64,000 bases of DNA from the NCBI GenBank assembly GCA_038496445.1, contig JALMLS010000320.1, positions 186,001-250,000 of the forward strand. Reading direction: 5' to 3'. The notes beneath the pieces are model-generated. The model was given only the letters and a program-made list of their open reading frames with translations, was not told the origin of the DNA and did no database searches. The position numbers and the translations under genes were made by a program. The stretch's first letter is position 1; the number at the start of each line of letters is the position of its first letter. The DNA is from Trichosphaerium sp. ATCC 40318. Its lineage: Eukaryota; Protista; Tubulinea. Below are positions 2,602 to 61,424 of the stretch, piece after piece.

Positions 2602-4077
2602 TCACATCGCACAATACTCTTCAAGGTTTGTTATATTAGACTGTTGTATAACCTTACCAGCCACTAAAACCGATCTAATTCCGATTATATGATCTGGAAC
2701 CTCTTGTGGTACACATTCTTGATTTGCTATTGATGTAACATTAAACAGCTCAATGTGAAGCCCTTCTAGTACTCCTTTCTTTTTTGTACAGAAAACGTGC
2801 AATTGACCATTTTCATACCAAGCCTTACAAACACCATTCTCTTTACCTGCTTTGAAAGTATTCTCCTCTCGTAATTGCCCATTTGAATACCAGATACTCT
2901 CAATACCTTCCCTACCCCTCTTACAATACGTGCATTTATCTTTCAACTGGCCATTGGCATACCAAGTCTTCATCTCGCCTCTGACTTGTCTATTTGTTGT
3001 TGTGCAAGCCAGCTGGATTTGACCGTTTTCATAATAACAAGCGATCTTTTCTGTTACTCTATCAAGTTTAATGACCTTCCTCTCGATGCTGCCGTTCTCA
3101 TAGTACATGGTGGTCTCACCTGTGGTATTGCCTTCGCCTATAATTGATTTCGAGAGCAATTGACCATTTGGGTACCATTCTCTTGATACACCGTACTTCT
3201 CACCGTTCGTTAGAGTAGAGGCTTCTTTCAGGTTTCCGTTTCCGTAATATTTTCGTACTGGTCCTTCTATCTTGTTGTTCTTGGCAATATATTCCTTTTT
3301 CATAGCACCATGTTCGTACCACTTTCTAACACTAAAAGTTAGAATAAAACAAGAAAAAGAAACGGAGTAAAAACAAAAATGTATCATTTTAGCGCAGCTG
3401 CTGGCAATTTACAAGAAATGCTCGTTCAAGTACCTGCATTGACCATGTTTCTTGGCGTTTTTATATGTTTTTTGAGATTTCATTCTCCCATTGGTAAACC
3501 ACGTTGTTACGATGCCTTCATACTTTCCCTTTCTTCTGATACCATAAGTCTCCTTCGTACCATCACTGTACCATGTTTTAACTTCACCTTCTTCTGTACC
3601 ATTTACCTTGGTACTATGATACTCTAAGACACCATCTTCAGTCCAATTCTTATACTCTCCTTCTATTTTACCATTCACAAAGTTGAATTCTATTCCTAGC
3701 TGTCCATTTTTGTGATACCTCCTAAATAACCCATTCTTAACACCATTCACTTGACTATACTCTGTTTCTATCTCTCCGGTATCATAGAACTCTCTACAGT
3801 TTCCGTTTTTCCGCCAATGACCTTTAACTTTGCCGTTTGCATGCCATTGTATCCATAGACCGCTGCGTTCGAGTGATGGCGTAAAGTGGGTTCGAATTGC
3901 AAACGTTTTTGATAGCGTATGCCATTTTGTAAAGGATTCTGCATTAAACGAACAAATATAGCGTTGTATGTCGTTTGGGAGTGATTGAATAGAAATAGAA
4001 GTGTTGTTTGCAAATTCGTGTTTGCTTTGGTTCTTTTTGCGTAGAGCGATAGTACCGTCTTTGAGTGGAATTGACAT
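2602..4077 (-). CDS. F-box + MORN-variant (YwqK-like) repeat protein, 2 exons
   Basis: F-box-like SLPNDIQRYICSF, then many 24-aa W/Y-x-x-NG...G repeats. Intron 3433-3326 (GTAC..TTAG) joins the two ORFs as GQCR|KWYEHG. Confidence 0.85.
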
Positions 4078-4266
4078 TACTGGTTATGGTGTATAGGTTG
4101 TGTTATTTTTAATGGTGTTGTAAAAATAGGTACAATTTGGCGCGTAAATTTATTTCTCTTCAAAAAATAAGGTGTTCCGCTCGTACTTAAGAAGTCACAG
4201 TTCGTTATAGAATGAATGACAATACAAATGCAGACACTAGTATAAAGGAGTGATTTTTATTGTTAG

Positions 4267-5940
4267 TTAATCAGCTTGATCCCAGAAAGAGCCTATACAT
4301 ACTGGCTCATTAATACGACATATAATGTTGTTAAAGCAAAATATGGTGCAAAAGCCTTTAATGCAGTTCGACGCAAACACGCAAGGTGTGCTTTTAACAA
4401 TTCGTAAACACTGGCGTTGTTTTTTGCAAGGTATTCTAGCCGGAATTGATGGTGGTTGTGTTGGCTGTACTGGAGCTGTTGGCGCGGCTGTAGTTGGTAG
4501 ATTGGCTGGTGCAAATGGAATTGGAGCAGATGGTAGATTAGTTGGCGCTAGCGGATTCGGAGCAGCTGTAGTTGGTAGACTAGTTGGCGCGAATGGATTA
4601 GGAGCAGATGGTAGATTAGTTGGTGCGAATGGGTTTGGAGCAGATGGTAGGTTAGTTGGTGCAAGCGGATTAGGAGCAGCTGTAGTTGGTAGATTAGTTG
4701 GAGCAAATGGATTTGGAGCAGATGGTTCAGTCGGAGCGCTATTTGATGATACAATTATAGCAGATCTCTTTGGCTCGCCACAAAAAGCGCGAGTACCTTG
4801 TCTGCATAGCGAAGTGTTAGAATATATTTGGACAAAAATAAGAAGACGTACAAGGAGACTCCTTCATTTGAATAGTAGTTCTGAAACGCTCCATACAAAC
4901 TAGCAGCAATATTGCTGTCTTGTCCTGGAGCTGTCAATCTTATTGTGACACTGCACGATGCTGTTTGTGATCGTTCAATGTAAGATTGAAAGGAAAGTCT
5001 ACCATTACGTTGAACATATGAGTCAAGTGCATTTCTACTGCAAGATAGTGAAGTGTTAACAAGAAAACCCAAAGGTTGATCAAGAATAAAGTCACCACGA
5101 ACGAAAGCTGTTTGAAGCACTGGTAGCCTTTCGTAGTTTTCACAAGTCAGAGTAAACTTAATGTAGTCGCCTACTTTTAAGTTATTCATATCAGCTGATC
5201 CAATGGCTGTTAAATTGTGCCTGTAGTAAGTTAGTAAAGAAATGACAATTTAAGAAAATATTGAGAAACTGATGTACCAACAAGCAGCTTTAGGCTGACA
5301 GCAAGCATAAGATACTCGAGTATTTGTAGATACCAGAAGTTGCTTTCCTCGTAGAGTGTATTTTACCTCATCAACAGATGACAGATATGTTTCATTTGTG
5401 TAAGGTAAACAAACGTCAACAGGCTCAGTAATATCGTTCTCTACAGCATATTCTGCTTCAATTACATCTCCGGTTTCTGAATTTCTGTACTGTATTCCAA
5501 TATCCACATTGTTCGTAGACTCTTCGACACGGAAGTTGTAGCAATCTAAACCGAACATAAGTAACAAAATCAAGAACAAAAATAGGTTTGTTTGACGCAC
5601 AACAGCCATCTTGATTAAAATCCAGCGGTGGATCGATTCTACCATAGATGCCATTATACACAGCAGAACAAGACCCGATTGCAAATTCACTAGATAGCTC
5701 AAACCCAACACCAGATTTTATAGTGCAGGTGGTTCCGTTGAGAGGAAAACTATCTTCAATCGTTGCTACCAAGTCTCGTCTTTCACCAAGTATTGAAATG
5801 TCAATGGTTGTTAGAGAATTCTCTGGAGTTTTTGCGTTTGCTATAACGGTCCTGAATAACTGGAAGTCATCCATCTCTAGCGTTTGAACACATAGCATAT
5901 AAAGACTAAGCACGATCAAGAGGTGTTGTAATGACTGCAT
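4267..5940 (-). CDS. Secreted multidomain protein: N-domain, Ig/DUF11-like domain, Pro/Thr repeat linker, Cys-rich tail
   Basis: Signal peptide MQSLQHLLIVLSLYMLCVQT, then ILGERRDL, YACCQP, LKVGDYIKFTLTCENY, (APNPFAPTNLPS)n and a C-terminal Cys cluster. Paralog of 47100-48862 with matching intron positions. Confidence 0.75.
4440..4740 (-). repeat. Coding tandem repeat of 36/42 bp (APNPFAPTNLPS / APNPLAPTNLPTTA)
   Basis: About 6 near-identical units are visible. The + strand Gly/Ala-rich ORF 4325-4903 is their antisense shadow. Confidence 0.9.
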
Positions 5941-6551
5941 CTTATAGTAGTTTAAATAAAGTGGCACGCGCTTGTTTGAAGCGTGCTTGTTTATGTGAAC
6001 TTCTTTTTGACCAATAGTGAGCCATTGTGGATCCACAGACTTTGTTTTTGCAATATGCTTGTTAAATAGGTTACAACAGGAAGAACAAACTGACACGCGT
6101 TCTCAAAAATAAACGAGCTGATCATCTTTGTCACAATAATTGCACCTTTGTGAAACGGAACAAGGTGCAATTATTGATTACCTGCACTGGCATTGTTGTT
6201 ATGGCCAAATTTCGCCGCTAAAAGAAGATATAAAGTCCTTGTAGTTATAGTTCTCATGTTAAATCACGTGTCAATCCGTGAAATTAGCTCCTCGAGCGCG
6301 GGAGTTTAAACACATAAAATGTATGCTATTGGCGCAAATGTAAATGCTGTTGCTTTGTCAAGATTATTTGCCTACTTTAATTTTCTTTCTGAAAGTTAGT
6401 AGCAATTAATAACAGGTACAACGTTAAAATGTAATGACAATGAGAAGAGTAAGTATACTAATAAGGTTCTGAGAACCAAAAAACTGCGTAAACGATTGTA
6501 TTTCAAGGATGTTTTATTCAATCGTTGCAGTAGCTTGTACTAAAACCCGCC

Positions 6552-6710
6552 TCAAAACGGGCCTCCTGCAAGGAGATTAATACCAAGGTAGGTCAAGTGA
6601 TCATAAAGGTTTAGTCTTAGTAGAGGGACAGAGTCTGAGCACGTTGGATCTTCTCCAGAACCATCACAACTTCTATAAGAAGATGTATGTGTAGCAAACC
6701 AGTACTCATT
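6552..6710 (-). pseudogene. Orphan 3' exon of a class 3 lipase
   Basis: NEYWFATHTSSYRSCDGSGEDPTCSDSVPLLRLNLYDHLTYLGINLL* matches the Lipase_3 C-terminal E-x-W...C...GEDP-x-CS...DHLTY pattern. There is no GHSLG exon upstream before the next gene ends at 6996. Confidence 0.65.
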
Positions 6711-6995
6711 CTAGTATGAGCGTGTTGAAGCGCTGCAATGTCTTCGCCGCTGTTGGCGTTTTTTCAACAAACAAAGTCGCTACTCATATCCTAAATAATT
6801 TCTATGCCTCATATATGATAAAATGGATGCTTTAAGGTGAATTAAACATTCAATGCATGCGTGGTACAATGTACTGAATGCTTATACTGATGAACAAATA
6901 CAGCAAAAAAACGCAAATTGCTTCTTTCTTTTTTATCAATAGAGTCAATTTTCCAACCAGAAAGTTCTTTAATTCTTTTTTTTCTGGTGTATTTA

Positions 6996-9000: not shown

Positions 9001-9716
9001 ATGTCAGCAAAACACAAGGTAATTAGAATAATTAGTAACCTAATACTCATTTAACAACGACATAGAGGACTTGCGACTCCTATCGTATTTATAGCCACAT
9101 ATTACACCTTCCTGTGGAGCTACACCTTATTATCACAGAGATAGATGCTGAAATATATTGTTTATGGCCTCTGTTATCAAAACACACAGCGTTGACAACA
9201 AGGTTTGATATAGACTTGAAAAAACATGGTAAATGGTTAAGACACTCTTATCTCTCGAAGGTGCCACAAATACTACAACAAGATTACTGGATACATGGCC
9301 AAAGAAACGGCGAGAGCACCACTTGGTTTAACAATGGAATGTTACGCAAGCAGTACACGTTTATCAATAATGAACTACATGGCAGCTACAAAAAGTGGTA
9401 TGATGATGGTCAAATACGTATGGACTGTGTTTATGACAATGGTAAGCTACAAGGAGAATTCAAAGAGTGGCACATCCAGGGACACCTTGGAAAGATGTGC
9501 TTTTATGTTGATGGCAAAATACAAGGATTATGCAACCATTGGGGTGTCCAAGGTAACCTATGGATGCAATGTGACTATGATGATGGTAATCTAAAAGAAT
9601 ACAAGGAATGGCATACCAATGGTACATTATGGCAGTTGTGTAAGTATGAGAACAATAAACTGAAAGTGCGCAAGGCATGGGATATGCAGGGTAATTTGCA
9701 AATAGTTGAGCAATAA
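9001..9716 (+). CDS. F-box + MORN-variant repeat protein, 2 exons
   Basis: Exon 1 MSAKHK (9001-9018), phase-0 intron 9019-9065, then HLPVELHLII...WPLLSK...TTRFDIDLKKHGKW and 24-aa repeats. Confidence 0.85.
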
Positions 9717-9938
9717 AGAACAGTAAATTTTACTATCATTTGTTGAATTCAAGCATTCAAAAATGAACTGATCCTGCCTCTAGGTTGTCGTGTAAATCAG
9801 CAAATATATTGCTTTTAGACCACGTAATAGCATTGCTTATGCACAGCGTTGGTAGGGCTAAAGACTTGTATCAATTAACAATAAATTCTATTTTTACACC
9901 AACATATGAATGAATGTTTATTGACTTGTTTGGTACAT

Positions 9939-11499
9939 TTAGAAGGTTCTGTCGTCTCTTGAGCGACCGTGCATTGTACCAGTACCCTCAATAAGATTAT
10001 AAGGATACGGTAGCGGGTTGCTAGAGGCCTTGTTGAGTGCCTGCATTTGCTCATCAGTCAAGGTAAACTCAGTTGTACCGAGATTATCAAGAAGATGTCT
10101 CATTTTTCTTGCACCAATGAGAGTTGAAGTAACACCTGGTCTTTGCATCACCCAACGGAGTGCTACTTGAGCTACAGGACGCTTGATATCTTCTGAGATC
10201 TTTTTCAAAGCGTCAATAGTTCCCCACGTGCTAAAAAACAAGCATTAGAAAGTGAATGTTTTCAAGGTAACAACTTACTGTTCATTTGCAAGGTTTGACC
10301 ATGCTGTTTCTTTCCAACCTACTTTCTCAGCCCATGCAACTCGGCCGTCTTCTGGCTTCTTCATACCACGTACATACCTTCCAGACAACCAACCTCCTTT
10401 GAGAGGTGACCATGGAAGATAGGCAACATTGTTGGCCTATTGAGATTAGTATTTTAGAAAGCCTGTCAGTGACATACACGACAACATGGAAATAGTTCAT
10501 ATTCAGCGCTTCTAGACAAAAGACTGTATTGAGCTTGTAATGATACGAAACCTATTGATATAAATCAGCAAACACGGTAAAAAACTCAATGGGAAAAAAA
10601 GGTATTACATGTCATATTCTCATATCGAGCAATGTTCATTGCGTTTTGAACGGCCCACGCAGGCCAGTTTGAAATACCAATGTATCTTATTTTACCCTCC
10701 ATGACCAAGCTGTGAAGTGTTCTTAGAAGCTCACGAACTGGTGTACCAGCATCAAATCCATGAAGCTATGAAAAAAATAAGGTTGGCAAGAAAACGGCTT
10801 TTTAGCACGTGATTTCGCTCTTACTTGGTACAAATCGATGTAATCAACATCTAAACGCTCGAGAGACTCATTGAGACAACGAATAATAAAAGAACGGTTG
10901 TAACCAACATTGTTTGGTCCTTTACCACCCATACGGAAAAATCCTACGTGACATTAATAAAAACAACGCTTCAAACTTATGAAAATTTGTTTTTTCAAAA
11001 TTGTGACATCACGTGCCTTTTGTAGCAAGTACTATTTGATCTCTGTTGTTTCTAGCTTTGATCCATTTACCAACTATTATAAATTATAGGTCAGATGACA
11101 TGTGTTGCTTGTTTGGGAACACTAAATAGCAGAATTCTAGTTACAAACCAACGTACCGACTCTTTCACTTTCTCCTTTACCGTAAATGTTTGCGGTATCA
11201 AAAAAGTTACCACCAGCTTCTACAAACTTATCCATAAGAGCGAAACTCTCTTCAGTTGATATTGTAGGAAGGTTGTAGTCCATATTCTTTGCATTACCAA
11301 ACGTCATAGTACCTACAAAAGCAAAAAAAAGTTAACAAATGTTTCATAGTGCGAGAAACCCTAAAAACGGTTCGTACGTACCCATACAAATCTCAGAAAC
11401 CTTTACACCACTGTTACCAAGGTAGTTATATTTCATTGTTGTCTTTCCAGCAGGGTCGGACATAATTTTAGCTCTTAGTGAAGTATCTTCGTCAGACAT
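9939..11499 (-). CDS. Aldo-keto reductase, intact copy, 8 exons
   Basis: YLGNSGVKVSEICMGTMTFG, FFDTANIYG, VLATK, SLERLDVDYIDLYQLH, WSPLKGGWLSG, AQVALRWV and LIGAR motifs. All exons join in frame, with one GC-AG intron. Confidence 0.92.
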
Positions 11500-12092: not shown

Positions 12093-13160
12093 TTACGGTT
12101 TGTTGGATACAACTTCACCGTGTTTATACGTAGTCTCCTCAATTATCTGACCATTTTCCCACTTCTTTAACTCACCATGTCGTTTACCATCATAAAAATT
12201 ACAAGAAAAAGTAAGGTTGCCATAAACGTCATATCGTTCAACAAGACCATGAAACAAATCGTTTCGATATTCTGTTTGTGCGGTTAGACGCCCATGAGTA
12301 TATTCTTCATACTCCCCAAACTTCTTCCCCTTTATAAGCGTGTATTGTTCAGAAATATGACCCCTCGAATCAGTTATTGTTACTTTACCGGACATATCTC
12401 CGTGATTAAACGTCAAAGATGTATGTGAACCGTTTTTTGAATACCCACAATAAAGTTAGTAAATGCTATGATACGCAACTCTTAAGTAGATTTTTCAGAA
12501 TGAGACAATACTATAACAGCTGTGAATAACAAAATAAAAATGTTCTGAGGTAAGCGAAACGCCTCAAAGATTCATTTCGATCCAAAAGTAAAAAGTCAAA
12601 GAATTTTGGAATTGTTGACACTTGTCGCAAAAGCGATGCTGGAGAATATACAAAGTTGTGGGTACCTGTGCCACACGCCATGTTTTCTTAATTCCATATC
12701 AAATAAACCAGATGATGTGTCTTTAGATAATAGATGCCATTTTGAGTGTGGATAAGAAGCCAAAAGGTTGTGCAAGTCAGCTGGTATTAAATGAACCCAC
12801 CTGTCTTCTTCTAAGGCAATGCCAACAAAATAACCGGATTTTATCCTTTTAGAAACACCATATTCTTCTTCGAACATCTCACCTTCAAGCAGCTCGTCAC
12901 CTTCAAACAGCTCGTCTCCTTCAAAATGTTCCTCTTCTTGCAGCTTTTTAACATGGCTAGGAAGCTCCAAAGAACAAAGCTCTTCCCATGTAAGATGAGC
13001 AGCATCGTCAAGATCTACAGTGTCGCTATGCTGCGTTAGTATTTGATTAAGTTCATATCTTTGACAACGTACTCTTCTATCCACTCTTTGTCAGTGTGAA
13101 GGAAACTACTGAATGGTATTGTGGAAATATAACTCCCAGTGTTTTCTTTTCTTTTCTATC
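12093..13160 (-). pseudogene. Divergent F-box + MORN-variant family member with an acidic N-terminal insert, probably defective
   Basis: HLIPADLHNLL...WHLLSK...FDMELRKHGVW matches the family linker, and a MORN-variant exon lies at 12093-12444. The in-frame acceptor after a TACTAAC branch point reads GG instead of AG (12446-12445). The 5' end is unresolved. Confidence 0.6.
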
Positions 13161-17967: not shown

Positions 17968-18270
17968 CAAGCAACAGAATAAACAAACGTTAAACAATTT
18001 CTCTACCACTAGAACGTAAGCAGGTTTTTGGTAACAACCCTCAACCAACAATAACTTACAAAGGGTACGTACACTCCACAGCCCCAGTGAAGCAACAATT
18101 GCGGATATGGTTAGCGGAGCTTTTCAATAATTGTACTGCTTCACCAATCATGGTCGGGTTCTATCACGTGATAAAAAATAACGCAAAAAAGTTAAGAGTC
18201 AGCTGAAAGTCTACACAGTCAAAAGACACCTACCTTTAAAATCTAAGGATAGCTTCCCTGTTTACCCGAA

Positions 18271-19078
18271 ATGGCCTTACAACACAATGTATGGTATTTT
18301 ACAAGAATTTTCAGTAGCTAACTGTGTTTAGGTAAGCGCAAGCAGGGTGCACCACGATAGTCCCCTACTACGTCTTCCTGTGGAGTTACAACTAGACATC
18401 ATTGATTTAGACTCAGAAGTGTACGTTAAAATGCCAATCTTATCAAAACAAACAGCAACGACTACAAGATTTGATTGTGACCTGAAAAAACACGGAAAGT
18501 GGCTGAAAATAAGGATAAACTCGAAAGTATCATGTGAAGAGTATTGGAAACACGGTGAACGTCATGGAACGTTCAAATCATGGCATAACAACGGTCAACT
18601 AAAGAGCGAACTTAAATATCTCAATGGTAAGCTAGAAGGAGAGGCCAAGGATTGGCACATAAACGGTCAGTGTAGTCAACAACGCTTTTATGTCAATCAC
18701 AAGCTTCATGGAGAGTTCAAAAGGTGGCACAAAAATGGACAGTTGCTATTAGAGTGTCAGTTTTTTAAAAACAAACATGAAGGAAAATTTCGATCATGGT
18801 ATAGAAACAACGGACAGCTGATGGTGGAGCGTCATTACGTTAATGGCTTATCTGAAGGAGAGTATAAAAAGTGGTATAGTAACGGACAACTGATGGTTGA
18901 GTGTCAGTACATTAATGGTAAACGTGAAGGTGACTTTAAAATTTGGCATGTGAATGGTCAAATGTCTTATCGTTGTACTTATGTCAATAATTACAAGCGA
19001 CAATGCAAGGGTTGGAATGAGGATGGTACACAACAAAAAGAAAACGCTGCGCTGAACGGCTGGTTAAGGCCAATGTGA
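18271..19078 (+). CDS. F-box + MORN-variant repeat protein, 2 exons
   Basis: Exon 1 MALQHN (18271-18288), phase-0 intron 18289-18331, then LLRLPVELQLDII...ILSK...TTRFDCDLKKHGKW and about 7 WH/WY-x-NGQ repeats. Confidence 0.88.
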
Positions 19079-19645: not shown

Positions 19646-21137
19646 ATGTCGGAAACTAAAAAGAAGCTTACTGAAACTATCTTGGCAGATACTGCAGCAA
19701 AGACAACAATGAAATATAACTACCTTGGTAACAGTGGTGTAAAGGTTTCTGAGATTTGTATGGGTACGTACTACCTGTTTTTAGGGTTTCTCGCACTATG
19801 AAACATTTGTTAACTTTTTTTGCTTTTGCAGGTACTATGACGTTTGGTAATGCAAAGAATATGGACTACAACCTTCCTACAATATCAACAGAAGAGAGTT
19901 TCGCTCTTATGGATAAGTTTGTAGAAGCTGGTGGTAACTTTTTTGATACCGCAAACATTTACGGTAAAGGAGAAAGTGAAAGAGTTGGTACGGAAATCCT
20001 TAGGTTTTAGTAGTCCAATAAGTCCGTGGGTTTTTTTGTTGACATTCATTGTATAGTCGGTAAATGGATTAAAGCTAGAAACAACAGAGATCAAATAGTA
20101 CTTGCTACAAAAGGCACGTGATGGCATAATTTTGAGAAAACAAATTTTGTGCAGTTTGCTTTTATTAATGTCATGTAGGATATTTCCGTATGGGTGGTAA
20201 AGGACCAAACAATGTTGGTTACATGAGTCTCTCGAGCGTTTAGATGTTGATTACATCGATTTGTACCAAGTAAGTTGCTATTTACTTTCATTTTCTTATA
20301 CAGCCATAGCTTCATGGATTTGATGCTGGTACACCAGTTCGTGAGCTTCTAAGAACACTTCACAGCTTGGTCATGGAGGGTAAAATAAGATACATTGGTA
20401 TTTCAAACTGGCCTGCGTGGGCCGTTCAAAACGCAATGAACATTGCTCGATATGAGAATATGACATGTACCACTTTTTTGTTGCTTTGATAGGACGTCAT
20501 AGTTTTGTTTATTTGTTTAACTAGGTTTTGTATCATTACAAGCTCAATACAATCTCCTTACACGATGCCCTGAATATGAACTATTTCCATGTTGTCGTGT
20601 ATGTCACTGATAGTGCTTGCAAAAATACTAATCTCAATAGGCCAACAATGTTGCCTATCTTCCATGGTCACCTCTAAAAGGAGGTTGGTTGTCTGGAAGG
20701 TATGTACGTGATATGGAGAAGCCAACACAAGGTCGAGTTGCATGGGCCGAGAAAGTAGGTTGGAAAGAAACAGCATGGTCAAACCTTGCAAATGAACAGT
20801 AAGTTGTTACCTTTATAACGTTCACTTTCTAATGCTTGTTTTTTAGCACGTGGGGAACTATTGACGCTTTGAAAAAGATCTCAGAAGATATTAAGCGTCC
20901 TATAGCTCAAGTAGCACTCCGCTGGGTGATGCAAAGACCAGGTGTACTTCAACTCTCATTGGTGCAAGAAAAATGAGACATCTTCTTGATAATCTCGGTA
21001 CAACTGAGTTTACCTTGACTGATGAGCAAATGAAAGCACTTAATACGGCATCTAGCAATCCTCTACCATATCCTTATAATCTTATTGAGGGTACTGGTAC
21101 AATGCACGGTCGCTCAAGAGATGACAGAATGTTCTAA
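19646..21137 (+). pseudogene. Aldo-keto reductase, inverted duplicate carrying frameshifts
   Basis: Exons are near-identical to 9939-11499, but a 28-nt segment (NRSFIIRCL codons) is missing at about 20222 and 1 nt is missing at about 20945 (GGTGTAC vs GGTGTTAC). Confidence 0.8.
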
Positions 21138-21360
21138 ATGTACCAAAAAAAAATCGACCAGCAATAAAGTTTCTCCGTTCTCATCCTTTTCAAGCCATAT
21201 TTTCGTATGTTTATAGAAACAATAAATATGTACCAGGTGCACAGTGAATTGCCTAGGGTTAACCAAAGGTAATAGTAACAGAATTGTAAAAAGTTGTTCG
21301 AGTCTTTATTTTGACGCTCGACATCACGTGACTTTTACAAATTGATTTTTTGCTTTGACG

Positions 21361-33100: not shown

Positions 33101-36100
33101 GGGACAAGTACGTATTTTTGTATTTACTAGCCAGAGGAATTCGATTGTTCTTCGTATTGTACTCATTTCCAAATAGGTGGTGCTGTTTATGCATTTTCAA
33201 GTTCTGGCCTGTGTATATCGGCGTCAGTTATAAGAAATCGTTACACTGCAGCGTCACCTCCTTTGACAAAAGTTGAGTCTGCTGTCAACTGTAACGCTGT
33301 ATGTCCTGTTGGTACGCCTTTTTTTTGTTTTGAGTCTTTCTCTTACAGAGAACTTACTAACGCGCATTCTAATAGTCGAAATTATGGGGACTATGTTTAC
33401 CAACAATACTGCTGGAGCATTTGATATCAGCCAGAGTCAAACTGTAGAAGGTGAGCTAGAAGCTAAATTGAAACAACATGTTAATTTCAAACAATAGGTG
33501 GAGCCCTAGTAATCACTGGGTTACGTGTATCAATCTCCAATTCGACTTTTGACGGTAACAGCGCCCAGCTTAAGGCCGCTGTTGAAGGTGGAGCTATGAG
33601 TGTAACAGATACTTGCTTGTTTGTGGATGATACGAGCTTCGAAGGAAATATTGTTAGAGGGCAAGATTTTGATGCCCTTGGAGGTGCTCTCCATGCTGAT
33701 GCATCTTTCGTATTCATGCAAGGAGTAACTATGGATAATAACCTTGTTGAGGTTAGTCAAACTGGAATGTACGTAAAAAATACGTTTCGTTCTTGTCTTC
33801 GTAACTCTTTGTTTTTAGTGCTGGCGGTGGTGCTGTTTACATATTTGGATCTGTTATGGTCACACACGATACTACTTTCAGTAGAAATATTGCTAGTAGC
33901 CCAAGGAATTTCGCTCTGGGTGGAGGTACGTTGTAGTAAAAAAAATCCATCAAATTAGATAAAATCACAAATATTGACTTCATCTTGCTAGCTATCGATA
34001 TTCAACTTCAAAGTCGATTGTTCATGTTGAACAGCTTCGTTACTGGTAATATGCTTGATGGCGGCAGTGGTAGTTTGGGTGGCGGTATCTACGTTACTCT
34101 TGAGTCATTCCTTTGCTTAACGAACGTCAATCTCACTATGAACCTTGTACCAAAAGGCAGTGGTGGAGCAATCGCTTTTAGCTCTGTTTCTGATACACCT
34201 TTCAAGATATCAGACTCTATCATTGAGCTTAACCAAGCTGACACAGGTAACACTTTGAGCAATATTTTGTTGTGTTGACGCAGTGGTAGGTGCTGGTATA
34301 TACATCAAGGTTGGTAATGGACAACTACAGAATACTTCAGTGACACAAAACAATGCAAGCGTGCGTGCTGGAGGTATATTTGTCGTTGGAGAGACTTCTG
34401 AGGTGGACATTTTTGATTCGAGCATTACAGCTAATTATGCACTTTTCCTGTACGAAATTTTACTCTATTGGTTGGTTAGGTAAGAAACTTACTCTTATTA
34501 ATAGTGGAGGAATCTACTTGAGTGAGGATGGCAAAGTAAATCCTGATAATCTAACAGAAATTGCAAACAACGCCAACAGCGAAATCACTGGTACGGTGTA
34601 ATTTTTTGTTGAAAGAAGACCTCAGTTTTTTTACCATTTTTTGCTTACTATTTTTTGTTTAGAAGCTGCTGACCCGACTAATTCTGAGTTCTTTATTGTA
34701 AGTAATACTCTAGATACCATAGAAGTGTTTGTTGTATCAAAGAACTTTCACAAACTCAACACAGGTTTCGGTGGTGACAATTATGAGGTAACTTTTTTTT
34801 CTTTATTACCCCACGTTACCTGTGACTCATGATTTTTTTAGGTAACATTTACTTCACCAACAGGCAATAGTACTGTCATCTCATCTCAAACTATGGGAAG
34901 TGAGGGAGCATTTGCAGATAATGGTGATGGTAACTATGATATTACATTGTTTGCAACGAACAATACTGCTGGTAGATGGAATATCACAGTCCACCTTAAT
35001 GGCACTCTCGTCGGAGATGGAAGAAGACCTAACCCTGTGTCATCTCTTGTTGCAGCTGGTAAGCCTCACTTTATTGTTGTAGTTGGCATTGTTTGTTTAC
35101 TGGTTTTTTTAGGTGAAGTTGGCCTGGATAGTATAATACAAACTGGAAGTGTGGTGACAAGATGTTCAAGATCTAGTATTTTTGTTAGTGCACGTGATAT
35201 GTTTGGTAACACGCTTGTACGTTTAGTGAAATTAAGTGTTAGCGCTTTTTGCTTATACTTCGCCTAGCAACGTTCTGGTGCTCTATTTTCTGCTGAATGG
35301 GTTGGTGAAGGTCTAAGCCATGATATTACTGTTAATGATTTGCGTGACGGGACATACAGTATTGACGTCAGACCACAAATTGGTGGTATGTTTTCGTATT
35401 GGTTATTTTTAAGATCAAATGTTATTTTTATCAACGTTAACCTTTGTGTAGGTAGTTTCGATATTCTTCTGTACCTTGACTATAATGGAAGTCGTACAAT
35501 AATCAACTCAGGACCACAAAGAATCTTAATTGATGGAGCTAGTAAGTGTTTTTCTTCCCTAATTATTTTTCGAGCAAATGTTAATGTTCTTCTAGCAACC
35601 CATCTATGCTCTGACTCCCTCGTACTTGGAGTACTTGTTACATGTTGTGTACTTGTAGTATTATACATTATTTTCGGTATTATCACTCTGATTTTCCGAG
35701 AACATGAGATATTGAGATTTTCTTCTCCTGTCTTTCTTGTTTTAACAGTACGGTTTTTTCTTTCTTTTTTTTTGTACGTTTTTTCCTGCTTATCTGTATA
35801 TTAGCTTGCTGGAGGTATATTGATGACGTTAGCTGTTGCCTTATGGCTTCCAGTACCAAGTGCAATGACTTGCAGCCTTGCCTTTTGGTGTTGGGGTGTT
35901 GGATTTGTACTCCTCTTTGGTGGTGTATTTGCTAAGAATTTCCGCTTGTGGCGTATCTTTGATAATGCGTCCAAGTTGAAAGTTAGAATTATCACTAATT
36001 GGCAACTTCTACAATACATTGGTATCCTTCTAATACCTGAGGTGGTACGTAAACCATGACAATCCATCGTTTTTTGTTACTACATTTCTTCTGACATATT

Positions 36101-42187: not shown

Positions 42188-43206
42188 ATGGACACAAGAG
42201 AAGAATACTCGTACACAGCCTACCTAGCTGAACAGGTATGCCATATTAAAAGCCTTATTTGCACAAGATGGCATTGTATGGCCTCTCTTATTGGGCAGTT
42301 AGCTAAAATTTGCAGGAAAGCGAAAACAAACAAGCAATAAACAAACTTTAGGCAGAGGATTATTCAGAGATGGTTGAAGCAGTTAAAAAAATAGCTTGTG
42401 GTGGTTTTGAACTGTCGATTGAGGAGCGTAACTTGTTCTCTGTAGCGTACAAAAACGTGGTAGGTACGTATGAGTCACTACTCTAATGGATTTAAAATAT
42501 TGATTGTACTGGGGTAGGTGCAAGGCGAGCAGCATGGCGCTTTGTGTCGTCCTTTCAAACCAAACAATTTGAAAGGTAAGCTACTTTTTATTTCTTTCCA
42601 CTTGTCTTCTCTTACCCTTGTTTCTATAATAGCAATGAGAGTGTATATACGATAACTATAATAAATACATACCTCAGAAAGATAGAAGAAGAGATCAAAG
42701 ACCTTTGCAATGAAGTTATAGGTATTCTAACAACAGAAATTTTACCCAAATGTTCAACAATTCAGTCAACTGTATTTTATATGAAAATGAAGAGCGACTT
42801 TCTTCGCTACGTGGCCGAAATAAGTATTGGTGATGAGCGTACAAGTGCTACTAACAATGCTTTTGAAGTTTACAATCAAGCCATCAAGATTGGTAGAAGT
42901 AACATGCGACCAAGTAACCCTTTACTCCTTGGCCTTTTATTGAGCTATTGTGTATTTCTACATGACATTTTGAACAATCCTACTGAAGCTTGTGCTATTG
43001 CCAGGAGAGTCTTTGATGATGCATTAGATTGTTATGATAGAGAACTTGATCATGATACATACAAAGAGACTAATATTATTCTTCAACTTCTAAGAGAAAA
43101 CTTATCATTATGGACATCAAACGATGATAAATATGAGAAGAGAGTTGAAATATATCACACTCATGGCCTGACAAGTGCAAAGGATTACATGGTTCCAAAC
43201 ACTTAA
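42188..43206 (+). CDS. Divergent 14-3-3 protein
   Basis: [52 protein letters not shown] and [14 protein letters not shown], in 4 exons. Confidence 0.92.
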
Positions 43207-43894: not shown

Positions 43895-46563
43895 ATGGTT
43901 TTTGTTTTAATTGTTTTATTATCATTCCACCTTTGCTCAGTAAACGCTCTTACAGGTACTCACGAGTCCTTATACACCTCTATTTAATCAGCTATAACTT
44001 ATGTAAATTGAATAAATGCTCTAACTCTTGTTCGAGCGTATTTAACCAACAAACAGCGCTAAGACACCTTTAGTTGTCACATCAATGGGACATACTTGCG
44101 CCGATGATTTATCATGCTACACAAGGATCCCTCAAGTATCTAACATTCTATTGAGTAGTTTTATACATACTTTTAACGGAAATATAACACTCAGTACATC
44201 TCTGACGATCGAATCAGGTGATAAACATACCAAAAACAAAATTCTGACAAATTCAATTACCTTTTTGTTAGTCCTTTTTACCTTACTCACAAGCTATTTC
44301 TGTCACGTGAGAATATCTAATTTATTTAGCCTATGCAACAAAATCGATAAATATCACGTGTTCTCAAGAAAGTATGGACGTTGACATGAGTAACTCCAAT
44401 TTAGTATTGAGTCGACTTTCCGTACGAGGTTGTCAACTGAATATCAGAAACGTTGGAAATCTTGACATTTCGTAAGCAAAAACCCTTTTGACTCAAATCC
44501 ACTCACCAACTTTAGTTCAAGCTCATTTGGTTCGTTTATTTCAGATGCTAGAAAGGTAATGAACTATGGAGCTATGGCTATTTCTAGATGGTATGTCATA
44601 GCCAACTCACCACTTTTCATGCTAATAGAGGGTTGCGACTAGTGCCAACATTACAATCAGTTCAACGGAGTTTTCTCGAAATAATCTTAAAAATCTTCAA
44701 GATAGTACTACTTTTGGTGGTGGACTACATGTTGTGGATAGCAACTCACTTATTGTAAAAGAATGCTTATTTCACTCTAATACTATAAGTTCTGACAAAA
44801 TTAATCTTGGAGATAGAATAGGCGGTAAGCAAACAAAAAATTATGAAACGATTTTGACATTATTCATTGTGTTAGGTGGAGGTTTATATGTCAAATCCCT
44901 TCAACAGGTCTGAACTTATAGAAAGTTTCTGCTTTTATTTGAATTAAATATTGGATTAGGTTACTATTGATGATAGCAAGTTCAGAGAAAATAACCTCTA
45001 TTTTGGTGATACAAGTACGTAAACAAAGAAATGAGACTATTGGCGTGAGTTACATTTATTAACACACTTAGACTCTGATACTACTTGTGGTGGAGCACTA
45101 TATGTCGATGAGGATGTGGTCAATACAGAGATAAGGCGTTGTGCTTTTGAAGATAATTCAATATCATACTTTAATCCAAGCTCTCACATAGCCCAAGGTA
45201 GGTTATTGTTAAATAGATTGGCCTTAATTAATTTTATGGTAATAGGTTGTAGTATTTATGCCGCTTCACAAGTATTGATAGAAGACACAATCATAAAAGG
45301 GAGTAATTGTAATGCGTAAGCAAGGGAATTACATTAATCTACTTCTTACTTTTTTCTGTTTCCAGAAGCTTAAACCAAGGAGTTGCAGTCTACACAACAG
45401 ACAATATGACTCTCATGTACGTTGTAACAAAGTATTTAAAAGCGTTGACTAATTATGGTTTGCAGAAATTCAGTCATTGTTGATTCAAGTACGAGCCGTT
45501 ATTTCACTTTGTTTAACAAAGAAACATGGATTAACTTACCGTTAAAAAAAAAAGGTCAAACTGGTCCAATACTGCAATGTGCTCCTACTCAATCATCTAT
45601 GGATACTTTGAACTCAATTTTATGCTCAGACAACCTTTCCATTTCTTGTCCAGGACTTAGTACGCCAAATAGCTTTTAACATCTTGGCTGCATTAACACA
45701 CAAACATAGGAAACGGTCCAACTTCTTGTGATAATTGTGGATCAGGTTCATGTTGCTCAGGTGCATTATCCAATATGGCTACTCAATATTGATATCAGAC
45801 TATAGAATCTGTTTCCTTTCAGTTTGAAGGCTTTGATACTTGCTTTATACCACTGCCTACAAGTCCACCAACTTTTTCACAGCCAACAATGTTTGTTGCA
45901 ATGCCTACAAGTACTATCTTCAAAGTTCAACCCTATTCAACTTATGAGAACCTCTAGTGTCCCTTGATTTTATAGTTACTGATACGCTCACTGTTCTAAG
46001 CCAAGAGTTCACAGTACAAGGTAACAAACTCAAAACAAAATATTATACAATCATGTACTGGTTCTGTTTTAACACCGATCTCTGGCTAGGTGATATCATT
46101 TTTTTGAATGGTTCTACACTTGAAGTCAATAGTGATTCACGCATAATCGTTGGAGGTTGTCCACAATTCAATGGAGCAGTAACATTTGATATAACAACGG
46201 TTGCCAATATAAATGTGATTTAACAATCTAACTAAGTTTGTTGTAGCTATCGGCGGATCCTATTCCTTTGTTTGTCTTCAGCGATGCGTGCGTTGTATCT
46301 GATACTATTGATACTTCAGGGATCACCTTGACTGAACCAAACTCATGCCTCTTACTCGGTACTCGTTTACAAAGTTCAACATTCCTTCTAACATTGCAAC
46401 AGAGAAGAACAAATTGAGCGTTTTGCTCAATACATGTAATAGTGGAACAGAGTCAGATGGCTTCCCTACTTGGGCTATTATTCTTGTTGCTGTTATTGCA
46501 GGTGCATTAGTGATTGCGCTCTTAATAACATTTGGGTACAGTTGGTACTACATGAACATGTAA
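43895..46563 (+). CDS. Single-pass surface protein with beta-helix (Pmp-like) repeats and a Cys-rich segment
   Basis: Signal peptide MVFVLIVLLSFHLCSVNA, F-x-x-N...GGGL/GGAL repeats, and a C-terminal TM PTWAIILVAVIAGALVIALLITFG. Confidence 0.7.
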
Positions 46564-47099: not shown

Positions 47100-48862
47100 T
47101 TACTTTTTAGCGATGGTACACGTGCACATTTCTCCACGGTATCCTACATGGAATGTAGCTCCTGGGTATCCTCTGGAAATGAAGTAACAATACCATTCAT
47201 CTGTTTCACATTGAATATCGCCACCTGAATCAGGGATCACAGCACATGGGAAAATAGCACAGCTTAACAAACACATAAGTCAATGAACGGCCGGTCGAAA
47301 AAAAAAATAGAGAAAATCACTGTGATCTTATTTAGAAAGCTGAAACGTACTCGCAAGCGCCGTTAATGATGCGAGGGGAAATGCAAACCAAGTCCATTGG
47401 TGGTGGCATCGTTGGAGGGACTGTTGTTGGAGGAAGTGTTGTTGGAGCAAGGGTTGGTGGAACTGTTGTTGGAGGGTTTTGGATAACAAGTGATGTTGGC
47501 GTTGGAGGTTCGCAGAAATCATCAGTACCAGATCTAAAATTTTAAGTGAATATAATTGGACATTGGTGAAAAGAGGCCAAGAAAGAAAAAAAAAAGCGCT
47601 CACCTGTCGCCACCAGAGTGAGAAAGAATTGGGAACATATCGTCTGTGATTGGTGTTCTGATTGTTCCTTGGATATTATCGACTTGACCACTGCCAGTCA
47701 ACTCAACGTTGACCATACAGACAACTTCTTCTCCATCTACCAGTTCGCCATTGAACTCTAGTGCGTTATTGTTTACTGTTTGTCCGGTCTGTGCAAAGAA
47801 GTTAGATACGAAAAAACCGCATTCAGTTAGGAAAAAAATACTGTTACGTACGACTTGTCCTGATCCCATACACATAACTGATGCTTCATCCATATCACCA
47901 AAGGTGTCGTCGAATTCAAAGGAAGCTTCGAACGTTTGGAGATCAGCAGGGATAGATTCGTAGTTGGAGCAAGTGAGCGATAATTTGATATTATCTCCTA
48001 CGGTCAAGCTATTAATATCGGCTCCACCAAGCGCTTCAACTGTGTGGCTAAACAAGAGTTAGTCAAATGAGGTTCTTTGCTGAAAATAAAAAACACGTGA
48101 CAAAAACGTGATAAAGTTGTGTTTTTTTTTTTGAGTTCGTTTTGATTGGCTGTTGTAGACGTACTAGCAAGAGATAGATGGTTGACAGCAAACGTATTGA
48201 ACGTTAACGTCTACGTTAGCGTCAGTACCAATGACATCAAAGTTGACAGAAGTGACATCACGGTAAGAGCTTGGATCGCCTTCATATTGAATACATACAT
48301 CGGTTGGGTCTCTAATATCAACAGGAAGTGGCAAGGCAGAAATCAAAGTTCCAGCACTGGCACTTTCAACTTCGACGGCCAAAGTCACAGCGTTATCAGC
48401 TTCGATAACGCGGATGTTCCAGCAATCTAACAAAAAGAAAGTAAGAAAAAAAAAAAAGATACGTCGGAGATCTGGTACAGAAAAGAATCTAAATGGGAAT
48501 AAAGTGAAGTAATATAACGTACCACACCCGTAACGGTTGAAGTTAATAGCTGGATCGAACCCAGTACCAGCAGGACCAGCGTAACGAGCTCTACAGCGTC
48601 CAACGACTGTAACATCGGTACTGAGGGCGAAGAAATTACTGACAATTGTACAAGAGGCTTCTAAAGAGTTTGCGCTACCCTCTGATCTTGTTACAGTCAA
48701 AGTACGCATGTCTCCAAGGATTCCAGCTCCAGTCACTATGTCGGTGACTTCTGGATTGACCTCATTGGCTGTTGCTTGCGAAAACGTTTCAAAAGTATCA
48801 AGTTGGTCTTGTGCCAATGAAACAGCAAGTAATACAGCTATACAAAGTAGGAGAAGCTTCAT
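47100..48862 (-). CDS. Secreted multidomain protein, paralog of 4267-5940
   Basis: MKLLLLCIAVLLAVSLA, ILGDMRTL, YVCCQP, LTVGDNIKLSLTCSNY, a PPTT linker and a Cys-rich tail. Confidence 0.8.
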
Positions 48863-49639: not shown

Positions 49640-51419
<1,780 letters not shown>

Positions 51420-55782: not shown

Positions 55783-56564
55783 ATGCTGACCAGTCCCAAT
55801 ACTGTGGTGTGCGAGGTATCATAATAAAGGCAAAGGTAGTTAACAACTCATATTAATAGAGATTAACTGCACAATCACGTGATTTCCATCTATTACACCT
55901 ACCAGTTGAGATCCAGCTAGATATTATAGATTTGGACTCATTTACATATTTTATATGGCCGCTTATGTCGAAACAGGCAGCAATGACCACAAGGTTTGAT
56001 GGTGAGATGAAAAAGCATGGAAAATGGGTTAGAAGGTTCAATAAGAAACTCGTAGAGCAAAACTACTGGAAACACGGCGTAAGAGAAGGAGAACACAAAG
56101 ATTGGTATTTCAACGGCCAATTGGAGACCCAGTGTAATTACATCAATGGTAAACGAGAGGGAGAATTCAAGGAATGGCATTTCAATGGCCAATTGGAGAT
56201 CCAATGTAATTACATCAATGGCAAACGAGAAGGGGAATGCAAACAATGGCATTTCACTGGCGAATTATATAGCCAGTTTAATTACCTCAATGGCAAACTG
56301 GAAGGTGAATACAAGCAATGGCATGACAATGGCCAACTGAGGGAGCGTTTTAATTACGTAAATGATGAGCGAGAAGGAGAATACAAACAATGGCATGACA
56401 ATGGCCAATTGCGCGTGAAGTGTAATTACATCAATGGTAAACAAGAAGGAGAATGCAAGGAATGGTATGCCAATGGCCAATTGGAGAGCCAGTGTAATTA
56501 CATCAATGGTAAACAACAAGGAGAAGGCAAACACTGGCGTGATAATGGCCAATTAATTGTGTAA
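55783..56564 (+). CDS. F-box + MORN-variant repeat protein with a homogeneous repeat array, 2 exons
   Basis: Exon 1 MLTSPNTVVCE, phase-0 intron 55816-55859, LLHLPVEIQLDII...WPLMSK...TTRFDGEMKKHGKW, then 6 full 24-aa repeats and a partial one. Confidence 0.9.
56103..56560 (+). repeat. 72-bp coding tandem repeat (MORN-variant units)
   Basis: TGGCAT...AATGGCCAATTG...TGTAATTACATCAATGG..AAA....GAAGG recurs at a 72-nt period. Confidence 0.9.
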
Positions 56565-56758
56565 CATGATGTTCATTATTTTAAGGAGTTTGATGGTGGA
56601 ATACCACGTGGTATCCTTCCTGGTTTAGACGTTGCAAGGTCTGCTTGCCATCACTTAACATCCTTCTGAAGGAATAAATGTCAAGAAAAGTCAATTAAGT
56701 CAGCGTAACAGTCATTTTGTTACACATCAGTAGCGATCACACTGCACAATACCTAAAA

Positions 56759-58729: not shown

Positions 58730-59118
58730 GCACTTTCAGGTTTTTTGGCTATAAAAAATACCCTTTGACTTGTAACACCTAAAATAAATGGTTGACTGTT
58801 ATTACAATGTTGTTTCTTTTATTCCAGAACGGTATTGGGACATTTAGAAAGGCGAAACTTGTTGAAGAAAACCAATGAATATGATCAAAAAAAAAATTGT
58901 TTGTTGTCGTCCATATCCAATAATATCAAGCTGTATTTCCACTGGAAGCGAGCTTAGATAGCTACACATTATCCATCTTTTGAAGCGTGATTACTTTGCG
59001 ACATAAAAGAATTGCTTCAATGATACTATCATAAAAATATTATTTGATATATTCAATCAAAAAAAAAGTGATTGATTAAAATTCTGTAGTCAAACAAAGT
59101 AGTTCTATACTACTACAA

Positions 59119-59952
59119 ATGGAAGAACACTCAGGAACAACTAATTACTTCGACCTTATCGCGCTCCCAGTTGAAGTAGTAGTTCATATTCTTAAACAAG
59201 GAACGCATACACTTCGCGCGGCCCAAACTTGTCGCCTCTTGAGAGATATCGTTCACAAATATGTTGGATACAACCACATCAATGTTATCCATACATCCAC
59301 AGTGCTAATGCTTGCTATGCGTCCTTTATTACTGCAAAACACGAGCCTTAGATTAAACAAGCATACAATGAATGATAATCATTTGCGTTTACTTAAAGGC
59401 GTACATACTATTAGCATGATTGATTGCACTCTAATAACGGATTATGGGTTCAAGTCGATGGCTGGCGTACATGCGATTTATCTATCAGAAACGAGCATAA
59501 CAGATGATGGGTTGGATGCGTTGGCTGGAGTACACACAATCTATTTAAATAGATGTGAACAAATTACAGACAAGGGCATCAAGACACTGGCGGGAGTACA
59601 CGATATTGATCTGTCACAAACGAGCATAACAGATGAAGGTTTGAAGGCGTTGGCAGGTGTACACACAATCTGCTTGTGTTGTTGCAAAGAAATAACAGAC
59701 AAGGGCATCATGACACTGGCGGGAGTACATGAGATTGATCTATCAGAAACGAGTGTAACAGATAAAGGCTTGAAGGCGTTGGCAGGTGTACACACAATCT
59801 GCTTGTGTTGTTGCAAAGAAATAACAGATAAGGGCATCATGACACTGGCGGGAGTACATGATATTGATCTGGCACTAACGAGTGTAACAGATGAAGGCAT
59901 CAAAGCGTTGGCTGGTGCACACAGAATTGCTTTATCGTATGCGACAGTATAG
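59119..59952 (+). CDS. F-box + leucine-rich repeat protein, intronless ORF
   Basis: LIALPVEVVVHIL...AAQTCRLLR F-box followed by about 8 LRRs of the form ITDxGxxxLAGVHxIxL. Confidence 0.9.
   Translation: MEEHSGTTNYFDLIALPVEVVVHILKQGTHTLRAAQTCRLLRDIVHKYVGYNHINVIHTSTVLMLAMRPLLLQNTSLRLNKHTMNDNHLRLLKGVHTISMIDCTLITDYGFKSMAGVHAIYLSETSITDDGLDALAGVHTIYLNRCEQITDKGIKTLAGVHDIDLSQTSITDEGLKALAGVHTICLCCCKEITDKGIMTLAGVHEIDLSETSVTDKGLKALAGVHTICLCCCKEITDKGIMTLAGVHDIDLALTSVTDEGIKALAGAHRIALSYATV
59566..59930 (+). repeat. 129-bp coding tandem repeat (a 21-aa + 22-aa LRR pair)
   Basis: ACAGA(C/T)AAGGGCATC starts at 59566, 59695 and 59824. Confidence 0.92.
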
Positions 59953-60317
59953 CAGGTCTATTATCTTTTTAGAGCGCTACACATCAAGGGAATCACGGCT
60001 TTGTCGAATGGATAGTATGGACAAGTTATGGCAGCTCATACTTTTTACTTAGCAAGTTCACAAGAAGGAATGTCTTATCTTGACTTTGCCTAAATTGACA
60101 TATTGGTGATGTTAACTGTGTTGAATCCTCTTGCTTGTTGTAATACCATAAAAATATGTTTATTTGATTAGAGTGGTCTAGCGAGGGTATGAATATTTGA
60201 AGAATTCTATTTTGTCTTATGTCCTTTTTGACACAGTTCACTACACTAAAAAGGCAATTGACATTAGCTAATGTTCTTTCTATGTATTGTTAACGAATAA
60301 TGTGTCAAGGTGTATTC

Positions 60318-61424
60318 TTATTCTAACGTTTTTGGAAATATCCAACCTTTGTGGTCTAATTTACTTCCATTAATATAAAACTCTGAAAAATAAGATCCAT
60401 TATAATACCAATATCTGTATTCTCCTTCTAGTTTATCATTTTTATAAAAACAATGAATTTTTAACTCTCCTTTGTGGGCACGCCAAACCTTATACTCTCC
60501 TTCTCTTTTACCATTGATATATCGACAGGTTTTCTTCAATTCTCCATTGGTAGACCATACCTTTAATTTTCCATGTACCTTACCATTGACACAAAAAAAC
60601 TGCTGTTTAAGTCGGCCATTTGAATACCAACTGTTGAACTCTCCTTCTTCTTTACCATTGGCATAATGGCTATGCTCTATAACTTGACCTTTACTATTCC
60701 ATCGCAAGGAGTCTCCGTCTTTTTTACCATTGAAAAAGAAGCATCCGCAACTAAGAAAACCATTGTTATGCCATTCCTTGTAAACACCATGTAAAACACC
60801 TTTCAGATAGCAACATTGTTTTCTCATTTGATTGTTTTTATGCCAACACCTACAATCTCCTTCTCTGATACCTTTGACATATGTACACTCCTCATCCAAT
60901 ACACCATTCACGTGATATGTTTTATACTCACCGTCTAAAAGACCATCGACAAAGTGTGAATGCTTCTTTATCCCAAGACCATTATACCACTCTTTGTATT
61001 CTCCTGATAACTTACTGTTCTCATTGTAATACGATTCAGTACATCTATTACCATTGTAGTACCTTAAAGGTATGTTAGCGTGTCTTGAAAGATCACTCGA
61101 GGTAACTTTCAAAACAAGATAAAAAGGTCTTGGTTCGAAAAATCTGAGATCAGACTTTTTTTTAACCACGTGTCAATAAAAAGAATTGAAATTATACCAT
61201 GTTTTGTATTCTCCGTGGAGTTTCCCTGATATGTATGTACACTTTGCACATATTACATCGTTGAAGTATTTACGCCACCTCCCATGTTTTTTTAAACAAT
61301 CGTCATACCTACTCGCCTTTGCTGCTGTATTTGACAAAACTGGCCATATCTTGTATAAAGAGGTGTCCATTTCCATGATATCAAGCTGTAACTCTACCGG
61401 AAGTGAAGTCAGGTCGCTACACAT
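60318..61424 (-). CDS. F-box + MORN-variant repeat protein, 2 exons
   Basis: LTSLPVELQLDIM...WPVLS...SRYDDCLKKHGRW. A phase-2 intron at 61197-61063 splits a Trp codon (KTW|YYNG), followed by about 10 repeats. Confidence 0.88.

Follow-up and report, generated by a model that had tools for sequence, protein, structure and literature searches.

F-box proteins (PF00646 and PF12937), such as D3/MAX2, Fbx4, and the FBXL proteins, carry an N-terminal three-helix module of about 40 residues that starts with LPxE[LI]xxxI and is rigidly joined to a C-terminal repeat domain, and they occur as multicopy families with variable repeat arrays. F-box modules combined with a lineage-specific short repeat, FNIP, form families that are expanded in amoebozoans such as Dictyostelium and are also found in giant viruses that infect amoebae, such as Mimivirus. 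Here, we describe a family of genes in which a conserved N-terminal module (N-module) precedes an array of MORN_2 repeats, a domain that to our knowledge is not among the known partners of the F-box. The genes lie in a 64-kb stretch of DNA (hereafter the window) from Trichosphaerium sp. ATCC 40318 (assembly GCA_038496445.1, contig JALMLS010000320.1, positions 186,001 to 250,000). The N-module is probably a divergent F-box derivative with a function that is predicted only, and we cautiously favor the view that the family provides alternative substrate receptors for SCF (Skp1-Cullin-Rbx1) ubiquitin ligases, with the MORN_2 sheet as the predicted binding surface. A literature search returned no description of receptors that fuse an F-box to MORN_2.

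With F-box proteins the family shares a predicted three-helix start, a junction modeled as a rigid link to a C-terminal repeat domain (here the putative substrate binder), and variable arrays in multiple copies. In contrast to F-box proteins, it fails the Pfam F-box models, lacks the conserved Trp after [CS]K, and has MORN_2 as its partner domain. Compared with the F-box and FNIP families, whose members are generally known to have a recognizable canonical F-box, MORN_2 takes the place of the FNIP/IP22 repeat. Two groups of MORN proteins provide further points of reference. The giant-virus MORN or "YwqK antitoxin" families of Orpheovirus, Hyperionvirus, Pithovirus, Marseillevirus, and Harvfovirus are likewise expanded multigene families with arrays of MORN_2 hairpins, whereas the window genes have spliceosomal introns, a host-like composition, and cellular neighbors, together with a conserved N-module and junction that were traced to no viral record. 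Eukaryotic MORN proteins (MORN1, the junctophilins, the radial-spoke proteins RSP1/10, and the N-domain of SETD7) have the β-hairpin repeat fold in common with the family but belong to canonical MORN (PF02493), give a weaker structural fit (root-mean-square deviation [rmsd] ~6 Å), and contain no F-box-like module. Finally, the Trichosphaerium genome paper (Tekle et al. 2023, PMC10521059) treats the "F-box" and "MORN/YwqK" models of this organism as separate domains of putative viral origin, and a fused architecture of F-box-like module, junction, and MORN_2 array is not described there.

The copies are dispersed, and the multigene family that they form is restricted to one lineage and encodes small soluble proteins. 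A preliminary description of this DNA had placed six genes in the window, on either strand and with a shared LP start and linker motif, and all six are present. With one further fragment, the members comprise five intact genes, one doubtful gene (g12), and one relic at 58.9 kb:

2602..4077, minus strand: gA, 457 amino acids, ~14 MORN_2 repeats; divergent N-module (LPNDIQRYI...WHTLSK); exons 3434-4077 and 2602-3331 around a phase-2 intron at 3332-3433 (GT..CTAAC..AG), with a clean spliced frame
9001..9716, plus strand: g9, 222 amino acids, ~6 repeats; exons 9001-9018 and 9066-9716; phase-0 intron 9019-9065 (47 nt)
12093..13090, minus strand: g12, divergent N-module (IPADLHNLL...WHLLSK...LRKHGVW) with an acidic N-terminal extension; ~4 degenerate repeats
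18271..19078, plus strand: g18, 254 amino acids, ~7-8 repeats; exons 18271-18288 and 18332-19078; phase-0 intron 18289-18331 (43 nt)
55783..56564, plus strand: g55, 245 amino acids, 7 repeats; exons 55783-55815 and 55860-56564; phase-0 intron 55816-55859
58905..58969, minus strand: relic 5' fragment of a family gene (MCSYLSSLPVEIQLDII), head-to-head with an F-box-LRR (leucine-rich repeat) gene
60318..61424, minus strand: g60, 323 amino acids, ~10 repeats; no intron 5' of the N-module; exons 61198-61424 and 60318-61062

A hidden Markov model (HMM) of the N-module, built from four copies, confirms the shared motif in all six genes and adds the seventh fragment, which was absent from the preliminary description. 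g9, g18, g55, and g60 match at E ~1e-32 to 1e-34, the divergent copies at E 7e-5 (gA, 3412-4083) and E 3e-4 (g12, 12599-13090), and the fragment (58847-58990, minus strand) at E 2e-5. A repeat HMM applied to the six-frame translation found no further MORN_2 genes in the window. As had been stated, no two copies are adjacent; unrelated genes for aldo/keto reductase, kinase, BET bromodomain, and F-box-LRR proteins intervene.

Introns are present in every intact copy. g9, g18, and g55 begin with a first exon of only 6-11 codons, followed by a homologous phase-0 intron of 43-47 nt that lies 13-14 codons before the LP motif. Because these three genes have this intron in common, retrocopies are excluded, in agreement with the preliminary description. 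In g60, a canonical (GT..CTAAC..AG) phase-2 intron at 61063-61197 interrupts the first repeat. The reading of gA and g60 as pseudogenes, which in-frame stop codons would suggest, was rejected: the stops fall inside the canonical introns 3332-3433 and 61063-61197, and splicing yields clean open reading frames (ORFs), so both genes are intact.

One of the six copies had been said to look dead, and the candidate is g12. Splicing of this gene from the donor at 12665 would use the TACTAAC branch site at 12461; GG stands at the position of the paralogs' acceptor, and the first AG after the branch site (12398) breaks the frame. Nor was a clean first exon initiated by ATG found in this gene, the first in-frame ATG being at 12877. 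An alternative, weaker donor at 12651 would restore the frame and may rescue the gene; judged from its splice sites, g12 is probably a pseudogene, with such a rescue conceivable. At 58905-58969, DNA with ~80% identity to the first ~65 nt of g60 is followed by a 1-nt indel, loss of similarity, a T-run, and a stop codon, and this segment is therefore a relic, adding a decayed copy to the family.

The C-terminal part of the proteins is a MORN_2 array. Five of the six genes match Pfam MORN_2 (PF07661) at 37-108 bits (E 1e-9 to 1e-32) against a cut-off of 29.6 bits, and g12 falls below it (15.8 bits, E 0.016); in gA, both exons score (E 5e-27 and 1e-13). The repeat unit is 24 amino acids (72 nt) long, and the arrays range from ~4 units in g12 to ~14 in gA, which bears out the variable number of 24-residue MORN-variant repeats noted earlier. 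Within the unit, the scaffold residues G9, W14, N17, G18, and L20 hardly change; the surface positions 1, 3, 13, 16, and 21-23 vary. The units of g55 are homogenized, with a mean amino acid identity within the gene of 60% (up to 79%) versus 26%-38% in the other genes; a 72-nt period is directly visible in the DNA at 55783-56564, and the 72-nt units are 67%-76% identical. This likeness of units therefore points to recent intragenic unit duplication or gene conversion.

In the AlphaFold2 (AF2) model of g18, the array consists of eight β-hairpin units with a predicted local distance difference test (pLDDT) score of 95-99. Compared by Foldseek with the viral structures in BFVD, the array matches giant-virus MORN/YwqK proteins at E 1e-19 to 1e-13, with an rmsd of 1-2 Å over ~180-200 columns at 23%-33% identity; the matches are to Hyperionvirus, Orpheovirus, Pithovirus, Marseillevirus, and Harvfovirus proteins. 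Solved eukaryotic MORN1, junctophilin, and radial-spoke proteins, in contrast, match the g18 array at E ~6e-9 with an rmsd of ~6 Å. The assignment of this MORN variant to a giant-virus-like type is thereby upheld.

The N-module comprises ~55 conserved residues in the six genes (LPxE[LI]xxxI ... WPLLSK ... RFDxxLKKHGxW). In the g18 model (mean pLDDT 93.4), helices at residues 17-26, 28-37, and 39-45 precede the hairpin repeats, and the isolated N-module is modeled with the same three helices (pLDDT 88.7). The junction between the two parts, RFDxxLxKHGKW, is modeled in g18 as a degenerate first hairpin at pLDDT >90, which suggests that the helices are rigidly coupled to the MORN_2 array. Such coupling would resemble that of known SCF receptors.

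When the isolated N-module was compared with the Protein Data Bank (PDB) by Foldseek, only seven matches were returned, four of which are F-box domains in Skp1/ASK1 complexes: D3 (7sa1_B, 6bro_B, and 6bro_D) and Fbx4 (3l2o_B), with an rmsd of 2.2-2.7 Å over 39-42 columns. A profile comparison used a reference F-box alignment consisting of the F-box-LRR gene of the window and its homologues, seven of whose eight members pass Pfam F-box. hhalign aligned a 55-sequence N-module profile to this reference over 45 columns with the LPxE motif in register (Prob 61%, E 8e-5). The score of 24.6 compares with 7.7 ± 1.6 (maximum 12.8) for 200 column shuffles, none of which reached the real score, and with 8.8 for the reversed profile. 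On visual inspection, the distance between LP and [SC]K in the N-module departs from that of the canonical F-box by a single residue.

Several results weigh against an F-box. The Foldseek matches to F-box domains, at E 2.8-7.9, are not significant, and the hhalign Prob of 61% is no more than moderate, with the LPxE..I motif perhaps accounting for most of it. Pfam F-box was detected in none of nine isolated N-modules (E limit 10) and in none of 50 full-length members (E limit 0.001), hmmsearch of the PDB with 9- and 55-sequence N-module profiles gave chance matches only, and an exhaustive search of 1.84 billion proteins with the N-module profile reached nothing outside this family. In addition, the Trp of the canonical [VL][CS]KxW is replaced by Ala in the N-module (LL[SC]KxTA).

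These results would also be compatible with a different role, in which the N-module is an N-terminal helical cap or oligomerization element of a MORN scaffold and the proteins, like other MORN proteins, work as adaptors at membranes, the cytoskeleton, or phagosomes and take no part in ubiquitylation. The lack of Pfam or PDB sequence matches to the F-box and the non-significant Foldseek matches point in this direction, and the solved MORN proteins (MORN1, junctophilin, and radial-spoke proteins) are scaffolds. Moreover, 48 of 50 N-module proteins have MORN_2 and no other domain, and the N-module never occurs with any other C-terminal domain, as would be expected of an integral array cap. However, the likeness to verified F-boxes lies far above the shuffled controls, the top structural matches are specifically F-box domains, and the spacing of LPxE[LI]xxxI ... 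LL[SC]K is only one residue from the canonical one. We consider a cap or oligomerization element, the main alternative, rather unlikely. The F-box assignment made in the preliminary description finds moderate support in the three-helix model, the structural matches, and the shuffled controls, and fails at the level of Pfam and PDB sequence matches.

Based on these data, a simple model of the family as SCF substrate receptors would comprise three parts. The first, a divergent F-box-like three-helix module (LPxE[LI]QxxI - D.E.Y - WPLL[SC]KxTA), would dock onto Skp1 of the ligase. The second, the conserved junction RFDxxLxKHGKW, would act as a degenerate first hairpin that couples helices and array rigidly, as in the predicted structure. 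The third, 4-14 MORN_2 β-hairpin repeats, would form an elongated sheet with a fixed scaffold and variable surface positions that would serve as the substrate-binding surface, and the paralogs would be alternative receptors for different targets. True homology to the F-box, docking on Skp1, ubiquitylation, and the kinds of target are the inferred elements of this model.

A MORN_2 array also occurs together with a RINGv domain (RING-CH E3 ubiquitin ligase) in the protein P0006, encoded at L007:4796-5398 (GCA_013566075.1, contig JACCDY011331419.1). The contig, 8.8 kb long, has densely packed genes apparently without introns, carries a 434-residue MORN_2 gene and another RINGv gene besides, and looks virus-like. 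MORN_2 arrays and E3 modules therefore seem to have come together repeatedly; P0006 carries a second kind of E3 module, and the fusion would fit a substrate-recognition role for MORN_2.

In the protein databases the N-module is a great rarity: its profile retrieved 54 cluster representatives at E <= 1e-3 among the 1.84 billion proteins, with no window protein among them. Twenty N-module proteins were traced. Thirteen of these are MMETSP transcripts marked "type:complete", so that relatives of the window genes are expressed, and four more are found in JGI/IMG only; each of the four members that could be placed comes from JGI sample 3300016894. Another contig, metagenomic and eukaryote-like with 47% GC, encodes one traced member. 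Because transcript and gene numbers rise together, the MMETSP members seem to come from a single assembly, and the traced members appear to represent mainly one marine protist transcriptome.

The window copies are 26%-51% identical to each other and to the database copies; at this level of protein identity between paralogs, synonymous sites are expected to be saturated. In a poorly resolved, star-like tree that has a single branch with strong support, g9, g18, g55, and g60 fall into one subfamily (Shimodaira-Hasegawa-like approximate likelihood ratio test [SH-aLRT] 97). Within it, MMETSP copies stand between the window genes, P0046 being the partner of g18 and P0037 that of g55; gA groups with P0049 and P0056. 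Since window and MMETSP copies interleave, the paralogs predate the split of the two organisms, and the family, as judged from these sequences, is therefore old and not a recent burst. The birth-and-death mode proposed in the preliminary description agrees with the decayed copies and with repeat numbers of 4-14, whereas the age of the paralogs (26%-51% identical, in an interleaved tree) argues little for rapid turnover.

The window itself has a GC content of 36.9%, and long ORFs are scarce. Its introns measure 43-135 nt, begin with GT and end in AG, and have a CTAAC-like branch site that closely precedes the AG; because the genes are broken by such short introns, the window is a nuclear segment of an intron-rich eukaryote. 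GC and intron statistics match those published for the Trichosphaerium genome, for which Tekle et al. (2023, PMC10521059) give 37.69% GC, 8.7 introns per gene, and a mean intron of 75 nt. According to that paper, F-box and MORN are the commonest domains among putative viral lateral gene transfers (LGTs) in Trichosphaerium. Dozens of the gene models in the accessible part of its tables bear the name YwqK antitoxin, MORN repeat protein (Pacmanvirus, Orpheovirus), or F-box domain protein (Indivirus), with lengths of 148-249 amino acids for the YwqK/MORN models and ~268 for the F-box domain protein models.

The window genes could accordingly be giant-virus genes transferred laterally from virus to amoeba, as proposed in PMC10521059 for Trichosphaerium F-box/MORN genes, and persist either as passengers or as domesticated host-manipulation factors. 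The prevalence of F-box and MORN among the putative viral LGTs of a genome with matching statistics, the many YwqK, MORN, and F-box models in its tables, and the close structural relationship of the array to giant-virus MORN/YwqK proteins (E down to 1e-19) are consistent with such an origin. Other features of the window copies speak for cellular genes. Three paralogs that are only 37%-51% identical have a homologous spliceosomal intron in common, the copies have a GC content of 35%-40%, equal to that of their flanks, and each stands by itself amid housekeeping genes; viral hallmark genes are absent from the neighborhood of every family copy in the window. A viral context, as indicated by intronless genes, hallmark genes nearby, or deviant composition, was not found around the window copies. 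No viral record occurs among the traced N-module proteins, and an IMG/VR scan with g55, which detects near-identical peptides only, returned no relative.

Because they are old (26%-51% identical), have flank-like GC, and lie beside housekeeping genes, the window copies are best regarded as long-resident cellular genes and not as recent viral inserts. Any transfer would have been ancient, and we judge an origin of the genes by transfer from viruses to be distinctly improbable. It is conceivable, at the same low probability, that the repeat module was exchanged with giant viruses long ago, whichever way it moved. The earlier suggestion of exchange with giant viruses can thus be kept for the repeat module, whereas the genes in the window look like established residents of the cellular genome.

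The names of related proteins raise the further possibility that the genes encode YwqK-type antitoxin or immunity proteins of bacterial origin that neutralize a cognate toxin. Relatives in the databases are named "antitoxin component YwqK" by JGI, and a bacterial MORN_2 homologue lies on a gammaproteobacterium-like contig (L008). Yet the window genes are eukaryotic and intron-bearing, no toxin partner gene adjoins any copy, and an extra F-box-like module is present; in NCBIfam they resemble only a Leptospira MORN_2 adhesin, with scores of 20-55 bits that fall far short of the 250-bit cut-off. Gene context in effect excludes a bacterial-style YwqK antitoxin role, to which we give next to no credence.

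Returning to the model of the family as SCF substrate receptors, one extension can be considered, which we regard as a long shot. The genes might form a diversified ubiquitin-ligase repertoire of the amoeba, with MORN_2 surfaces that recognize proteins of giant viruses or intracellular bacteria, or that mimic or compete with viral MORN proteins. Under this repertoire reading, and with the same low likelihood, the family would be an SCF-based arm of innate immunity that has its recognition module in common with the pathogens, and the turnover of repeat units in g55 and the gene decay seen in g12 and the 58.9-kb relic might be traces of an arms race.

The remaining genes of the window belong to other families. 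The neighbors that can be recognized are common cellular genes and encode a glyoxalase, two aldo/keto reductase copies, a protein kinase, PMP-repeat proteins, a 14-3-3 protein, a Dim1 rRNA dimethylase, a BET bromodomain protein, and the F-box-LRR protein used in the reference alignment:

59119..59952, plus strand: F-box and LRR_6 gene, single exon, with 129-nt tandem LRR_6 units; of a different family from the MORN genes

Taken by itself, the N-terminus of this product reaches 26.2 bits on PF12937 and so exceeds the 24.3-bit cut-off, which makes it a positive control for the Pfam comparisons. Its closest relatives include transcripts apparently of the MMETSP assembly that also holds the MORN family, and Trichosphaerium models resembling it are annotated as "F-box domain protein, Indivirus" in the accessible part of PMC10521059. 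None of the window proteins has a record in the protein databases searched, and an exact look-up of the F-box-LRR product was likewise empty. No Rfam or tRNA features were found in the 64-kb window.

The aldo/keto reductase gene has undergone a recent inverted duplication (9926-11462 and 19683-21150), visible as nine collinear arm segments that are 82%-98% identical (most 92%-98%) and lie ~8-11 kb apart. g9 and g18 each adjoin one of the arms, outside the duplicated DNA. Co-duplication of g9 and g18 with the reductase was rejected, as the 92%-98% identical inverted arms leave out the MORN genes.

Two multi-exon genes on the plus strand, at ~30200-35800 and ~44000-46300, contain many GGxIY-type motifs, and one exon piece weakly matches Pfam Chlam_PMP; these genes probably encode large secreted or surface β-helix proteins. 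On the minus strand, the ORFs at 4758-5249 and 47603-48058 are paralogous and without a Pfam match (...GSADMNNLKVGDYIKFTLTCENYE... versus ...GGADINSLTVGDNIKLSLTCSNYE...); a short-period (36-42 nt) repeat at 4492-4719 adjoins the former. Finally, the 14-3-3 exon at 42580-43203 on the plus strand matches Pfam at E 4e-50, yet a word-indexed protein search with it was empty at E <= 1e-30, which reflects either an unusually divergent protein or the limits of that search.

More generally, the genes form a lineage-specific family of probable F-box type whose predicted recognition domain is unusual; the theme as such is known, and this version of it is partly foreshadowed in the literature. Should the N-module not be a working F-box, the family would be merely another lineage-specific expansion of repeat proteins. 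If, alternatively, the N-module docks on Skp1, MORN_2 arrays would constitute a previously undescribed class of SCF substrate-recognition domain. A biochemical role would then be available for a repeat that has multiplied enormously in giant viruses and bacteria, where current annotations go no further than "YwqK antitoxin" or "MORN repeat protein". The many F-box/MORN genes of Trichosphaerium counted as "viral LGT" would become one old, intron-bearing cellular family, a recasting that matters for the question of which way genes have moved between amoebae and giant viruses.

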